Of a DNA stretch of 64,000 nucleotides, positions 6,131-53,373 are shown piece by piece. Each line of letters opens with the position of its first letter. Within the stretch, counting starts at the first letter, position 1. Made by a program: the position numbers and the translations under genes. The DNA lies in assembly GCA_038496445.1 (NCBI GenBank), contig JALMLS010000577.1, positions 992,001 through 1,056,000 of the forward strand, given 5' to 3'. This DNA is from Trichosphaerium sp. ATCC 40318. Its lineage: Eukaryota; Protista; Tubulinea. The notes under the pieces were generated by a model. It was not told where the DNA came from. It saw only the letters and a program-made list of their open reading frames with translations, and did no database searches.

Positions 6131-7318
6131 ATGGAAAAAGAAATAGACGTATCAGGTCCCAAAAAGCAAAGCAAAAGCGGTTCAAAAAGGCACAATATCG
6201 AGCTAATCTCACTTCCAGTTGAAGTTATGGTTCTCATTCTAAAATGCGGGACATTTACACTGAGATCAGCCCAAACATGTCGTTTGATGCGAGATATTAT
6301 CCATTATCACGTAGGATACAATATAATTAATATTTCTAGCAAAAGTGAGTTAAACGTACTTTCTGGTAGCCCTTTACTTCAGAACACAAAAATTTCTTTC
6401 CAATCTGTCAAATATGTCTATGATGATTCGTTATATCTACTTTCAGGAGTACGCTCAATTGATCTTCGTTATTGTAAGGGAATAACAGATTATGGGATCA
6501 AAGCATTGGCAGGTGTACACACAATTAATATATCACTTACAAATGTAACAGATGAAGGTATAATAGCATTGGCCGGTGTACACACTATCAACTTAGCAGG
6601 CACAAATGTAACAGATAAAGGCTTGAGAGCTTTGTCCGGAGTACACACTATCAACTTGTTTGATTGTGATGTAACAGACAAAGGCGTTACATGCTTGGCA
6701 GGGTGTTATTGTATAAACTTGGGTGCTACATCAATAACAGATAAGGGTGTAAAGGCATTGACAGGTGTGCATGAAATTAGTTTAGCATGCACACATGTAA
6801 CAGATGAAGGTATAATAGCATTGGCCGGTGTACACACTATCAACTTAGCAGGCACAAATGTAACAGACAAAGGCTTGAGAGCTTTGTCCGGAGTACACAC
6901 TATCAGCCTGTGGGATTGCAGTAAGATCACAGATGAAGGTATAATAGCATTGGCCGGTGTACACACTATCAACTTAGCAGCCACAAATGTAACAGATAAA
7001 GGCTTGAGAGCTTTGTCCGGAGTACACACTATCAGCCTGTGGGATTGCAGTAAGATCACAGATGAAGGTATTAAGGTATTAGTTGGAGTTCATACAATTA
7101 ATCTTCGTGGTTGCCGGGGAATAACAGATTCAGGCATAAAGGCATTGGCAGGTGTCCATGAAATTGAGCTAAGGTCAACCAAAGTGACAGATGAAATCTT
7201 AGGGGCACTAGCCGGTGCTCATACCGTTGGACTTTCCCTATGTCAAGGAATAACACATGAAGGCGTTAAGGCATTAGCAGGAGTTCACACAATCAATTTA
7301 TTAGGTCCAAATAAATAA
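6131..7318 (+). CDS. Intronless F-box-like/leucine-rich-repeat protein
   Basis: N-terminal LISLPVEVMVLIL (F-box-like) followed by ~13 repeats of GVHTINLxxTxVTDxGxxAL. Near-identical DNA repeat units at 6540-7070. First ATG at 6131. Confidence 0.85.
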   Translation: MEKEIDVSGPKKQSKSGSKRHNIELISLPVEVMVLILKCGTFTLRSAQTCRLMRDIIHYHVGYNIINISSKSELNVLSGSPLLQNTKISFQSVKYVYDDSLYLLSGVRSIDLRYCKGITDYGIKALAGVHTINISLTNVTDEGIIALAGVHTINLAGTNVTDKGLRALSGVHTINLFDCDVTDKGVTCLAGCYCINLGATSITDKGVKALTGVHEISLACTHVTDEGIIALAGVHTINLAGTNVTDKGLRALSGVHTISLWDCSKITDEGIIALAGVHTINLAATNVTDKGLRALSGVHTISLWDCSKITDEGIKVLVGVHTINLRGCRGITDSGIKALAGVHEIELRSTKVTDEILGALAGAHTVGLSLCQGITHEGVKALAGVHTINLLGPNK

Positions 7319-8272
7319 AGGGTTGAAAGTGTTATCTGGTGTGCCACACTCTAGTACTGTGACAATGTTTAACTACCCCCGCGAAAATAAGGACAACATA
7401 AGAATCTAAACAGCACTGCAACAGCTGTCATGTATACCTACAATTAATAAAACGCCACGTTATACTTATTTCATCACCTTGCAATTTTTAGCAAATACCA
7501 AAGAACATAAAACAACAAGGAAGGAATCTATGACTGTGAAAAAAAAATTTCTTTTTATTTATCCCAACTGTGAATTGTTAAACGTGGTTGCCATCAAATA
7601 CACGCTAATTAGAGAATAACTACGTGTATTAGAGGCGTCGTGGTCTGGTCACGGCTAAGCTGGCTATAAAAGTCTGTACAAATATTAGAGGGATTCGAGA
7701 ATCTTTGAGGCGTTTTTACTCACCTCAGAACCAACTTAGACTTCAATTGCTATTAAACATGTAGCTACGATGCCATTCTTATACGTGTAAAAACAATTTT
7801 GTGATTTGTCTATGCTGTGCCAAGGAAAAGTAGCAATAGTCAAAGCAATTTTTTGCAAAGCATGCTTTTTCAATTTTGGAATTTCTGAAACTGTCTCAAC
7901 AGCGATGCTGGCCTAGTCTTTTATCTATCTGTAGTGTTTATAGAGTATTGGTTATGTTAGAATCAGACGCCCTGCTTGTAGTAATAGTAAAGCTAAAAAT
8001 CGCTGTTCCACGCTCAAACTAGTTTGTAGTTTACCTAAATACCTATGAAATTCATTTGTGCTGCGGTTACTCTCATTCACTCAATTTTACTGTAACCTTA
8101 ATAAACGGACATCTTAAACCCTTATTATTAACAACAGGTTGAGGAAACTTATTTCAATACAAGTTTCTCTCGCTTATGTTCAAAACCACTTTTTTTTTTT
8201 CTGCAAGTCGGTGGCGTTTAAAAAGCAAAAATGTTGGCTGAGGAGTAGATCTAGTAGTGATTTAATTCGTAG

Positions 8273-8351
8273 TTTGGGGGACGGAGACCCAGGTTCGATT
8301 CCTGGCGGGCCCCATTAATTGGGCCTGTGGTCTAGTGGTATGATTCCGTTT
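8273..8351 (+). tRNA. Candidate circularly permuted tRNA-Pro(UGG): 3' half 8273-8313, spacer 8314-8320, 5' half 8321-8351
   Basis: 3' half TTTGGGG-GACGG-AGAC-CCAGG-TTCGATT-CCTGG-CGGGCCC-C; 5' half GGGCCTG-TG-GTCT-AGTGGTA-TGAT-T-CCGTT. The halves assemble into a full cloverleaf with anticodon TGG and C73. Confidence 0.7.
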
Positions 8352-8799
8352 ATACATGTCCTTCGGGACCTAGATCTTTTTGTTGTTTTGGCACTTGCCT
8401 TGGTGCTAGGAAACTATCAAACTACTGAGCTTCGTTCTCATTTTTACAGCAAGTTTATAAGCATTGAGGGTATGCAAACATTGCGCTGTAGTACATTGAC
8501 CTTGATAGATATTTGACAGTCACATTGTTGAAAAAAAAAAAGATGGATTTGTCTATTTTGTTTATTGTGTAGTTTACTTTACTGTACCACAAACAGAAAA
8601 TTGGTACACTACATACATCCACCAACCTTAACGTTTAAGGGATTATATAATAGTGCGAATGTGTACATGTGTAAAGCAAAAGCCCAAAATCGTTGTTGGA
8701 GATGTCACTTGGCGGGCTTCTTTTTTTTTTTGAAAAATTGTTTGTTTGATCTTCCTTTACTGTCTTGAGTGTCGTACACGTATTTGTTCAGGAGATCGT

Positions 8800-18888: not shown

Positions 18889-20232
18889 ATGGACACCTGC
18901 AGCAACGAGGTCATACAGTTGATTATAGCGCAAATACCAGAATCATACCAAGTTGTTTGTCTTCATGTATCAAAGTTATTTAGAACGTTTGCGGATAAGC
19001 TAACACCTGATTTGTTATTTGCGTACAACATGTTGCTTGTAGAGGCAGCTCGAGATGGTCATAAAGAAGCGTGTATTTTCGCAAAAGAGCGTGGAGCGTT
19101 AGAATTCACGGTAGCGCACCAACGTGCTAAAAAAAACGGCCACGACGCTATTTGCGCTTTATTGTTGGAATGGGGCGCCGTTACAGCAGAAACCGTCAAG
19201 CCAGGTAACACTTACGCGGTATGTGCTGGTGGGAGCTGGTTTAAAGGCCAAATAAAACATTGCAGTATGGATGGCACTTTCATCGTAAAAGACATGGACT
19301 CGTCTTCGTTTATGGACACTTACCATGGTATCACGCCGTCTTCATTGGCTGTAAACGACAGGGACGCATGGAAACATATGGAAAAGCATTTCTGGCCAAA
19401 TGCAAAGTACAACGCTTCCTTCTTGGCTACATTTGTTAAAAAACTGGCAGGACAAGTAATACCGATGGACAAATGTAGGGATTATTGGTCTGCTAGGTGT
19501 CAATCGATTTTTGAGATACCAGAAGCAGAGGCTCCAACAGCAGAGTTGACAGCTGATCAAATGTATAATTTTGTGATAAAAATGGAGTACTCATCAAGAG
19601 CTCTTTACAGTAAACCGTTCAAATCACGTTATTTCGAGCTGTACTGGAATCAAACCAGAATGGGTGGTCGCGATCCTGATATTGTTTCTCGTGTCGTAAC
19701 CGTAGAAGACGCTGTTGAGGCACTCGGTGCAGAACTTACAGATGTTGATGAAGAAGCTGAACCTCATTTTATGGATCAAGAGAAAAAAAATGGTATTGTC
19801 ATTCCAGCTTCTGTAAAGAAACTTCTTTCGTGCCCTGGAGTAGCTACTGGGTTCTTTAAGACGCACTCTAACAATCCATATATGATTAAACTTGAGGAGT
19901 GTATCGTAAAGGAGAATTCGGATGAATTACGAGAGCAAACAAAAAGTTTAAAAAAATACACATTGCCTTTCGCTAGACCGCACCAGGGTAGTTGGGAATG
20001 GGTTGTTTGCTTTGATTCGGGAGATGAAGATGCAAGTGTTTGGATGGAGAATAGCAATGAACGTAAAACACTTGTTGCACCTACCATGCAAATGTTTTTA
20101 TGGGATTTAGCTCAAACAGGTTTATGTTGGTGGTATGCTTTGGACTCTAAAGATACAGAGTTTGAGTTGAAAAAAACGGATATAGGCGTTGCATCCTCTA
20201 CAAAGCCATTCGTATCCCCAAAGAATTGGTAG
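18889..20232 (+). CDS. Intronless protein with an F-box/ankyrin-like N-terminus and a C-terminal SMI1/KNR4 (SUKH)-like domain
   Basis: 447-aa ORF containing EAARDGHKEAC/AKKNGHDAIC ankyrin-like motifs and EKKNGIVIPASVKKLL...PFARPHQGSWEWVVCFD...VAPTMQMFL. Confidence 0.6.
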   Translation: MDTCSNEVIQLIIAQIPESYQVVCLHVSKLFRTFADKLTPDLLFAYNMLLVEAARDGHKEACIFAKERGALEFTVAHQRAKKNGHDAICALLLEWGAVTAETVKPGNTYAVCAGGSWFKGQIKHCSMDGTFIVKDMDSSSFMDTYHGITPSSLAVNDRDAWKHMEKHFWPNAKYNASFLATFVKKLAGQVIPMDKCRDYWSARCQSIFEIPEAEAPTAELTADQMYNFVIKMEYSSRALYSKPFKSRYFELYWNQTRMGGRDPDIVSRVVTVEDAVEALGAELTDVDEEAEPHFMDQEKKNGIVIPASVKKLLSCPGVATGFFKTHSNNPYMIKLEECIVKENSDELREQTKSLKKYTLPFARPHQGSWEWVVCFDSGDEDASVWMENSNERKTLVAPTMQMFLWDLAQTGLCWWYALDSKDTEFELKKTDIGVASSTKPFVSPKNW

Positions 20233-30000: not shown

Positions 30001-31041
30001 CTTTCTCGTTTTTGGAGCTAGAGATAGTGAAGGAGCATGTGAGCGCTTATGTTTTATAAAAAAAAATAAGAGTTGTTCGAAACCCATCGAATAAATAGTC
30101 TAACTGAGTAGGTAGTGTAGTAGGATACTTATAAGGTAGTGTGGTAGATTCTTCCAAAGCATCATACATACCCACAATGAATGTAAAGAGGTATGGACTC
30201 ATTGGTGGTGAAGTTTCAAAAGTTACTTTTTTTTTAGCTTCTTTAGAGATGCCCTGAAAGAATCCAACGTGGTCTTCAGGACCAACAGGTGAACTGCTGC
30301 TTTCATCCATGTTTGATATTGCCAATAGGGGTTCTGGTACAATAACAGAGATCTTGAAAAAGAATTGTGGTGAGACACAAGGCAAAAACAAAAATAAAGA
30401 GTTCAAGGAACGAAAAGAAAAACTTGTGTTTGCTGTTTGTATTGAGCGTACATTGAAAGTACATCGTAAAGCTGGTTCATCAAAGCAAGGGTATGCTGTA
30501 CGGGCGTAACAAGGTTCAAAATCTGTTGCGAAACCACGTTTTGTCTTGCCTTCTGCGTCCAAGTACTTCATGGAGTATACACCTGTAGTTGATTGTAAGA
30601 GCTACAACGAAGAAGATTTGAGGATTTTTTGGGTATTTCGTACCTGACGTTTTGGTTTGGTTCACTGGCGCTTCAAAGTTGATTACAAGCGTGGCTGGGC
30701 CCACTGGTAAAGTTTTGTTGAATTTGAAGGTAACCGTTTCATAGTGATCGTCATAGCTTGTTTCTTCTGACACTAGCTTCTCACTAGCCTAAACTGGTCT
30801 TGGTGGTTTTTTCAGTTAAAAAACGTACTGCCTGCAGATGAGTGCTTTTAATGGTTAACCCAAGCGCGTGTACGGCAATTGTGTTGTCAACTCCCTTCAA
30901 AATATCAACTGTAACTGTGCTTACACCTGCCACTTTATCTACTCCTGTTTCCATCTCAAACAAGAGCGCATAGTGCTTTGGTATGATAAATTTACTCAAG
31001 GCAGGAGTATAAAGCCCAGGTAGTGCGTATGATTCAGCCAT
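27029..31041 (-). CDS. M1 family (puromycin-sensitive-like) aminopeptidase, many exons
   Basis: [26 protein letters not shown], spliced HE|[19 protein letters not shown] and YGKGA motifs. Confidence 0.9.
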
Positions 31042-33459: not shown

Positions 33460-34161
33460 CTAGATATACTGTCTGGTTATCCTGCCAAGTTCAGTACATA
33501 TGATGTATTCACCACGCCTTGAACCATCCTGATAATAACACGAGATTTTTAGCTGTCCATTTTCAAACCATTTCTTGTACTCACCCTGAAGAATACCGTT
33601 TTCTTTGTACAATTGTAATTTTAGTTTACCGTTTTTATACCAGCGTTTTTCTACACCGTGACATTTGTTGTCTTTATAAGTATTATACGTTCTCATCTGT
33701 CCATTATCATACCATACTATGCCCTCACCATTCAGCTCTCCATTGGTATAGTTGCAAACACTCTGTAATTCTCCACTCTTAAAGTATCGTTTACACACTG
33801 AATCTGCTTCATTGTTTGTATACATGCTCTCACTTTCTAATTCACCTGTCCTGTACCACATTTTAAACGGTCCATGTATCTTATCATTTTTGAAAAAACA
33901 AGAAAATTCTAATTGATTATAATCAGGTGAGTACCATCTCTTTTCTGAATGTCTTGAACCGTGTTTCCAAATTACAAGTTGCCAACATTTATTACTTGAA
34001 GTGCGACTTCGCACGCAACGTTTCTTCCATGCTCCATGTTTTTTCATGTTTTTGTCATAACGTGTTGTTGTAGCTGATTTTATACAAAGAGATGGCCATA
34101 GTTTATAAATTTTTGGGCAGTAGTCCATAATTTCGAGGTGTAGTTCAACTGGTAGTGTCAA
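33460..34161 (-). CDS. MORN-variant repeat protein with an F-box-like N-terminus
   Basis: LPVELHLEIMDY followed by repeats of G...WY.NGQL.....Y.NG. No in-frame ATG at the ORF start, so an upstream exon or truncation is likely. Confidence 0.75.
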   Translation of the reverse strand: MTLPVELHLEIMDYCPKIYKLWPSLCIKSATTTRYDKNMKKHGAWKKRCVRSRTSSNKCWQLVIWKHGSRHSEKRWYSPDYNQLEFSCFFKNDKIHGPFKMWYRTGELESESMYTNNEADSVCKRYFKSGELQSVCNYTNGELNGEGIVWYDNGQMRTYNTYKDNKCHGVEKRWYKNGKLKLQLYKENGILQGEYKKWFENGQLKISCYYQDGSRRGEYIICTELGRITRQYI

Positions 34162-52875: not shown

Positions 52876-53373
52876 TCAGATATCACGTGTAGCAATGTAC
52901 ATTTTTACTCCATGTTGCATGTGATCTCCAGTGACCTTAAACCCTCTCCCTTTATAAAATTCTTTAGCCTTTGCAGTCTCCAATACAGCTTGTTTACATC
53001 CTTCTTTCTTGCCGTACTGGATACAATGTTCTAAGAGTTTACTTCCGTAACCTTTGCCTTGATGTCCAGGTACAACAGCCAAACTTGTTATACACAAAAC
53101 CTTTCCGTTTGGATCATGAGTTTCATGAGGCGATTCATCTAGTGTTGGTATACGCATTTTAGGCCATTTTTCTGATGTTATGTAACCTAGAAACGTTGGA
53201 GTCTTATCTTTTTGCTCTTGTGGCTCGTATAAGATAAAGCAACCGTTATTATTTACTTTTACGCGTTCTGTTATTATTTTAGGTAGCTCTTCGGTCCCAT
53301 ACGGTGAAAATACGAGATTATCGAGCTTTATTAGTTTTTGAATATCCTCTGGTTGGTCTGCTACGCGTATCAT
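52876..53373 (-). CDS. GNAT-family N-acetyltransferase, intronless
   Basis: LCITSLAVVPGHQGKGYGSKLL (motif A) and AKEFYKGRGF. Confidence 0.9.
   Translation of the reverse strand: MIRVADQPEDIQKLIKLDNLVFSPYGTEELPKIITERVKVNNNGCFILYEPQEQKDKTPTFLGYITSEKWPKMRIPTLDESPHETHDPNGKVLCITSLAVVPGHQGKGYGSKLLEHCIQYGKKEGCKQAVLETAKAKEFYKGRGFKVTGDHMQHGVKMYIATRDI

Follow-up and report, generated by a model that had tools for sequence, protein, structure and literature searches.

The stretch analysed here, 64,000 nucleotides of Trichosphaerium sp. ATCC 40318 (contig JALMLS010000577.1, positions 992,001 to 1,056,000 of the forward strand; the whole stretch is called the window below), contains a compact unit at 8247–8381 in which the two halves of a proline tRNA with the anticodon UGG stand in reversed order, the 3′ half upstream of the 5′ half. 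Put back in tRNA order, the halves form a complete tRNA-Pro(UGG), and they are enclosed by a leader and a trailer whose arms are complementary to each other. An earlier inspection of the letters (the sequence-only reading) had proposed a circularly permuted tRNA gene at this place, and the halves, the spacer and the flank features that it listed can all be read directly where it had put them. In window positions, the unit and its upstream box are composed as follows.

8217–8224, + strand: TATA-like box TTTAAAAA, read directly, a consensus-level match only; it lies 23–30 nt 5′ of the leader arm.
8246–8262, + strand: putative leader remnant of a tRNA 5′ half, from local alignment, with an A-box-like element and a D-arm-like hairpin (8248–8251 with 8259–8262, loop of 7 nt).
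8247–8254, + strand: 5′ arm of the terminal helix, AGATCTAG, the exact complement of 8370–8377.
8255–8272, + strand: leader interior, 18 bases, read directly.
8273–8313, + strand: tRNA-Pro 3′ half, tRNA positions 32–73, from ARAGORN on the rotated sequence and the cloverleaf pair count. It comprises the anticodon loop TTTGGGG (8273–8279, with UGG at 8275–8277), the stem strand GACGG (8280–8284), the 4-nt variable region AGAC (8285–8288), the T arm CCAGG-TTCGATT-CCTGG (8289–8305; B box 8292–8302), the acceptor 3′ strand CGGGCCC (8306–8312) and the discriminator C (8313).
8314–8320, + strand: spacer (intervening sequence) ATTAATT, 7 nt, which closes the acceptor stem as a hairpin and contains neither CCA nor a T4 run.
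8321–8350, + strand: tRNA-Pro 5′ half, tRNA positions 1–31, from ARAGORN on the rotated sequence, reading GGGCCTG TG GTCT AGTGGTA TGAT T CCGTT. It comprises the acceptor 5′ strand (8321–8327), the true A box (8328–8338), the D arm (8330–8344) and the anticodon-stem strand (8346–8350).
8351–8357, + strand: trailer linker TATACAT, which as an anticodon loop would yield A33.
8358–8369, + strand: trailer hairpin GTCC-UUCG-GGAC (GTCC-TTCG-GGAC in the DNA), which abuts the terminal helix (a stack of 4 + 8 bp).
8370–8377, + strand: 3′ arm of the terminal helix, CTAGATCT, perfectly complementary to 8247–8254.
8377–8381, + strand: T5 run resembling an RNA polymerase III (Pol III) terminator, beginning at the final base of the helix.

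When the halves are joined in tRNA order, ARAGORN calls a 71-nt tRNA-Pro(UGG), written tgg in its output, whereas the native order yields no tRNA gene in the whole 64-kb window with introns allowed or not, and a tRNA with an intron is likewise called nowhere in it. At gathering thresholds, Rfam gives no match to the unit in native order, the tRNA model included. The mutual pairing of the halves that had been claimed earlier holds over 7/7 pairs in the acceptor stem and 5/5 in the anticodon stem, with one G-U in each. Altogether 20 of the 21 stem pairs of the rotated tRNA are formed, and the lone exception, U13.U22, is common to true tRNA-Pro genes. Moreover, the rotated tRNA carries U8, A14, G18G19, U33, G37, G53-C61, the TΨC loop sequence and C73; CCA is not encoded in the unit. 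Positions 7–26 are identical to those of four linear tRNA-Pro(UGG) genes on metagenome contigs (L002–L004 and L006), and the acceptor, anticodon and T stems differ from these linear genes. Both strands of these stems carry the differences, so that each half fits the other.

The linear neighbours do not complete either half, as had also been stated before: no other strand able to do so was found in the 3 kb on either side. An explanation by a long intron or by a remote partner half was therefore rejected. A repeat or a short interspersed nuclear element was rejected as well, because the unit is single in the window, which holds neither a second copy nor a source gene. Many wrong rotations are also called by ARAGORN, as Thr, Val or other tRNAs, because three arms stay constant; these calls were rejected since stem pairs or U33 are lost in them.

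For the chance expectation, we counted on both strands of the window every site where a hairpin of 5 bp with a 7-nt loop is followed by a hairpin of at least 6/7 pairs at the acceptor position, and each site was rotated at every possible junction to give products of 70–77 nt. Among the 2,125 sites and 722,500 sequences obtained in this way, only this locus gave any tRNA call. The permuted arrangement is more than chance. Together with its defined anatomy and the absence of a bulge-helix-bulge (BHB) motif (see below), this non-random nature is the established part of the analysis.

Both flanks carry elements that could serve the expression of such a gene. The leader is exactly complementary to the trailer, and the hairpin and the T5 run are present as the sequence-only reading had described them. 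The terminal helix of 8 bp appears in the minimum free energy (MFE), centroid and cloverleaf-constrained folds, and because the trailer hairpin abuts it, the two could form a stack of 12 bp. The unit (8247–8376) is free of T runs of four or longer. Of 20,000 window samples with the same geometry, 3.1% had 8 bp or more of perfect complementarity between their 40-nt flanks (P = 0.031), and T5 runs occur in the window at 0.0096 per nt per strand. The TATA-like match stands at consensus level only, and AT-rich octamers are common in this genome of 37% GC. Taken together, the TATA-like box, terminal helix, hairpin and T5 run are arranged as in a stand-alone Pol III gene. The 3′-before-5′ arrangement is real, and it comes with the trappings of known permuted tRNA genes (spacer, no CCA, TATA-like box, helix and T run).

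Some smaller observations concern the same flanks. A T11 run at 8190–8200, about 50 nt upstream of the unit, could stop Pol III read-through from upstream or be a simple repeat. The leader sequence TTAAT (8262–8266) is complementary to ATTAA of the spacer (8314–8318) over 5 A-U pairs, so that leader and spacer might make contact, though in AT-rich sequence this may well be chance. In addition, the D-arm-like hairpin of the leader (8248–8262) and the terminal helix are mutually exclusive, because the hairpin draws on the bases of the helix's 5′ arm.

The leader also contains traces of what may have been a second tRNA 5′ half. In local alignment, leader TCTAGTAG--TGATT aligns to TCTAGTGGTATGATT of the true 5′ half, with P = 0.037 among genome-sampled 45-mers and P = 0.013 when near-collinearity is required. 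The A-box-like leader element upstream of the B box, which had been recognised before, was found again near the usual spacing, about 46 nt before the B box compared with 44 nt in a normal tRNA. At such a distance, TFIIIC-type promotion may survive, unlike in the algal permuted genes, from which the unit differs in retaining this element. Leader TCGT at 8267–8270 could pair with ACGG at 8281–8284 and is read as a remnant of the anticodon-stem 5′ strand; for the acceptor 3′ strand, no upstream strand able to pair with it was found. The decay of the leader consists of substitutions, a 2-nt deletion and a 4–5-nt insertion across positions 8–31, with positions 1–7 unrecognisable. In the inner 71 nt, disruptive changes are absent, and 71/71 positions are fit for the cloverleaf. 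Because a decayed outer half beside intact inner halves is unlike uniform neutral decay, the inner halves look selected, and the pattern points to purifying selection on them, provided that the leader homology holds.

Two tandem tRNA-Pro genes were probably the origin of this arrangement, to judge from the leader. The trailer was also considered as a decayed 3′ half and rejected, since its similarity is not significant. All permuted tRNA genes have been proposed to arise by tandem duplication (PMC3978253), and a preserved decayed outer half would directly support this model.

The position at which the halves would have to be joined is narrowly defined. All 40 possible junctions were scored for the 71-nt product, and any junction within the anticodon loop keeps the full stem pairing (20/21). 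Only junction 31/32 or 32/33 gives U33, UGG and G37 together, and these two are equivalent because one T is ambiguous. With junctions further 3′, the trailer TATACAT is placed in the loop and A33 results. The joined RNA would read GAUUCCGUU from the 5′ half followed directly by UUUGGGGGACGG from the 3′ half. The unusual junction near positions 31–33 noted in the sequence-only reading is thus borne out as 31/32 or 32/33, the sole option with a valid loop. It is not among the positions reported for known permuted genes, whose junctions lie at 20/21, 37/38, 50/51 and 59/60 and whose spacers measure 1–74 nt (PMC3978253).

Such genes are on record only for a handful of single-celled algae, a single nucleomorph lineage and one archaeon. 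Soma in 2007, Maruyama in 2010 and Chan in 2011 reportedly described permuted tRNA genes. They are known from Cyanidioschyzon merolae, prasinophyte green algae, the nucleomorph of Bigelowiella natans and the archaeon Thermofilum pendens, and Pro is absent from a 2014 review that tabulates them (PMC3978253). A 2026 review names only algae and archaea (PMC13578239), and our full-text literature search turned up no amoeba with a reported permuted tRNA gene. Like the known genes, the present unit has the 3′ half first, both halves on the same strand, a 7-nt spacer that falls within their range and no CCA; it also shares with them an upstream TATA-like box, a downstream T-stretch, a spacer free of signals, pairing between leader and trailer and a plausible tandem origin. 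In contrast to them, it has its junction at 31/32 (or 32/33) and neither a strict nor a relaxed BHB. Its host lies outside the listed algae and archaea. From a gene of this kind, a circular RNA intermediate and a mature, CCA-tailed, aminoacylated tRNA would be predicted.

The junctions of known permuted genes carry BHB-type motifs that are read by the tRNA splicing endonuclease, the weakest being that of T. pendens, described as 'no H' (PMC3978253). We searched for such motifs with a scorer of canonical geometry (a central helix of 4 bp, a pair of 3-nt bulges, each cleaved behind its second base, plus an inner and an outer helix), with the permuted tRNA-Pro(UGG) genes of metagenome contigs L001 and L005 as positive controls. 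The scores were as follows.

L001 and L005 controls, register 37/38: central helix 4/4, inner helix 7, outer helix 0.
This unit, register 31/32: central helix 2/4, inner helix 0, outer helix 2.
This unit, register 32/33: central helix 0/4, inner helix 0, outer helix 0.
This unit, register 37/38: central helix 3/4, inner helix 7, outer helix 0.

The motif was recovered in both controls, whose score is that of the relaxed hBH form, as expected for green-algal type II genes. At registers 31/32 and 32/33 of this unit the scorer found no BHB, hBH or HBh′, which counts against a functional permuted gene. The earlier remark that no canonical BHB is visible was right and extends to the relaxed forms. 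A wider scan with bulges of 2–4 nt yielded only registers whose cuts would fall within the D arm or within the terminal helix, and these were dismissed as spurious. The leader interior has no stable pairing with the trailer. No self-cleaving ribozyme family was found in the unit by Rfam search, even at E up to 10, and a ribozyme in the leader or trailer was rejected, there being no family match and the flanks being too short.

The anatomy of the locus matches a permuted tRNA gene, but no BHB is present and the junction falls outside the reported positions; the earlier reading as a permuted tRNA is partly supported. Our tentative explanation, to which we give slightly less than an even chance on the sequence evidence, is that the locus may be a working permuted tRNA-Pro(UGG) gene whose product matures without a BHB. 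According to this explanation, the starting point would have been a tandem pair of tRNA-Pro copies; the upstream copy's 5′ half would have decayed into the leader, and the 3′ half of the downstream copy would have been lost or have decayed, leaving the trailer. The A-box-like element of the leader and the TATA-like box may still assist transcription, and a Pol III-type precursor would extend from about 8240 to the T5 run (8381). This precursor could fold as a cloverleaf in which the 7-nt spacer closes the acceptor stem, while the terminal helix and the UUCG hairpin hold the anticodon region. The spacer would be removed by RNase P and tRNase Z, and CCA would be added. Finally, leader and trailer would be removed and position 31 (or 32) would be joined to 32 (or 33). 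For the joining, the RNA might be trimmed to its folded body and the nick then sealed by an RNA ligase, or an unknown endonuclease might act together with RtcB or Trl1.

Besides the missing motif, several observations weigh against a working gene of this kind. No enzyme route is known by which a eukaryote would process a 31/32 junction. For a eukaryotic tRNA-Pro, G38 and a variable loop of 4 nt are out of the ordinary; the linear examples have U38 and 5 nt. The MFE fold of the unit is not a cloverleaf, at −46.5 kcal/mol compared with −41.2 kcal/mol for the cloverleaf-constrained fold; such a departure from the cloverleaf is often seen with tRNAs. Significance is only modest for the leader homology and lacking for the similarity between the trailer and a 3′ half. 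In addition, no kin of the unit was found in one metagenome scan and two viral-contig scans.

Three other explanations compete with a working permuted gene. The unit might encode a tRNA-like non-coding RNA whose halves are never joined and whose role is other than decoding, which we regard as rather unlikely. Such an RNA might stay whole with a loop-closed acceptor, like YrlA, a group of tRNA mimics of bacteria and phages that have no anticodon loop and carry a Ro60-binding stem (10.1101/312249), or it might be a two-piece, CCA-tailed mimic in the manner of the two-piece transfer-messenger RNA (tmRNA), opened by RNase P and tRNase Z and held together by the acceptor stem, the anticodon stem and the terminal helix. 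The order of T arm, loop-closed acceptor, D arm and closing stem indeed produces a partial match to YrlA (RF02553; 17.2 bits, E = 1.3) and there is a weak match to permuted tmRNA (RF04321; 12.7 bits), while no BHB is present to drive circularisation; all of this speaks for an unjoined RNA. The unit resembles YrlA in its T arm, loop-closed acceptor, D arm and paired ends, and its 7-bp acceptor stem could be a substrate of RNase P. Because YrlA of M. smegmatis is cut by RNase P and given CCA (10.1101/312249), CCA addition alone would be no proof of a true tRNA. With the two-piece tmRNA (permuted ssrA) the unit shares the permutation and an acceptor loop that would be excised, and the mature RNA may likewise stay as two paired pieces. 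However, both scores lie far under the gathering thresholds of 69 bits for YrlA and 47 bits for tmRNA, and the YrlA alignment covers model positions 22–89 only, the tRNA-like part. No Ro60-binding stem module was detected in the unit, and its terminal helix is just 8 bp. YrlA has no anticodon loop, whereas the unit retains a perfect 7-nt Pro loop (UUUGGGG, with U33, UGG and G37) beside a decayed leader. Two-piece tmRNAs, for their part, are bacterial or organellar, contain an mRNA-like tag domain and have no anticodon arm.

Alternatively, the locus might be an inert relic, either a mid-fragment of a tight tandem tRNA-Pro array or a tandem pair with destroyed outer halves, too young to have decayed and with flanks that are coincidental. 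We consider this unlikely, a little more so than the unjoined RNA. A broken tandem pair predicts that the leader should resemble a 5′ half, which it does; the flank features taken singly reach only P ~0.03–0.04; and the flanks also share a 6-nt direct repeat, the palindrome AGATCT, readable as a target-site duplication. Yet the decay is strictly asymmetric, with a damaged leader copy and an inner 71 nt free of disruptive change, and the helix, the T5 run next to it and the TATA-like box are placed exactly where a gene needs them. Moreover, the spacer contains no terminator and neither another copy nor a source gene accompanies the unit in the window. A decayed tandem duplicate was the rival that the sequence-only reading had itself named, and it is weakened by decay that is confined to the outer halves. 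The last explanation keeps the known enzyme: the ordinary eukaryotic splicing endonuclease would cut in its usual 37/38 register, so that the trailer bases TATACA become loop positions 32–37 and a Pro body receives the loop UAUACAG with the anticodon UAC. In this register a degenerate hBH can be drawn between UUUG of the loop (8273–8279) and UAUA of the trailer (8351–8357) beside a GGG bulge, with 3/4 central pairs (U-A, U.U, U-A, G.U) and 7 inner pairs, and its shape is that of the algal controls. By our estimate from pair frequencies, 3/4 central pairs are expected by chance in ~15% of cases, and the intact UUUGGGG loop would be left unexplained. The product would combine a Val anticodon with a Pro body and C73, and it would have A33 instead of the near-universal U33, for which reason we consider the resulting loop non-viable. 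The motif in this register is probably chance, and cleavage there is extremely improbable.

If the locus is a working permuted gene, the known range of permuted tRNA genes would be widened to another eukaryote. Permutation would also be decoupled from BHB processing, which would imply an unknown route of RNA cutting and ligation, and standard finders would miss part of the tRNA set of this genome, as ARAGORN and Rfam report nothing here. A broader proposition, which is possible but in our view doubtful, is that many tRNAs of this eukaryote, perhaps among them its only Pro-bodied tRNA-Pro(UGG), are encoded in permuted form, their halves being joined at varied positions by a BHB-free cut-and-join or nick-sealing route. 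Were this true, the maturation route would be one undescribed in any organism, and permuted tRNA genes would for the first time be known from beyond the algae and archaea.

The metagenome scan returned four ordinary tandem tRNA pairs and two permuted tRNA-Pro genes of algal type. The latter are the tRNA-Pro(UGG) genes used as controls above, on L001 (LKMJ01004531.1, 11848–11907, − strand) and L005 (LFCJ01002828.1, 11402–11461, − strand). Both are classical type II genes with junction 37/38, a 14-nt spacer and an hBH, on contigs of ~50% GC. They are like the present unit in isoacceptor, half order, identical D-arm sequence and short spacer, and they differ from it in the 37/38 junction with its hBH, in flanks that are not homologous and in the base composition of their contigs. 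The permuted Pro isoacceptor of these two contigs may be a case not yet listed, from an organism resembling an alga.

Around the unit, the window contains few long open reading frames (ORFs). A leucine-rich repeat (LRR) protein of the LRR_6 family (395 amino acids, 6131–7318, + strand, Pfam E = 1e-33) has its end some 0.9 kb upstream of the unit, and its best relatives are only 42% identical, with MMETSP protist transcripts and an F-box/FNIP protein of a moumouvirus among them. The exact products of 6131–7315 and 18889–20229 are not on record, and no sister locus was found through the flanking genes. An exon-sized piece of an M1 aminopeptidase lies at 30047–30571 (− strand; Peptidase_M1_N, E = 3e-16), and because this gene is present in exon-sized pieces, the window is taken as eukaryotic with split genes. 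Pfam and Atlas searches identify no more than such a eukaryote, and the amoeboid lineage put forward in the sequence-only reading is a weakly hinted possibility. A MORN-repeat ORF at 33460–34161 (− strand) and a GNAT acetyltransferase ORF at 52876–53373 (− strand) are both ordinary.

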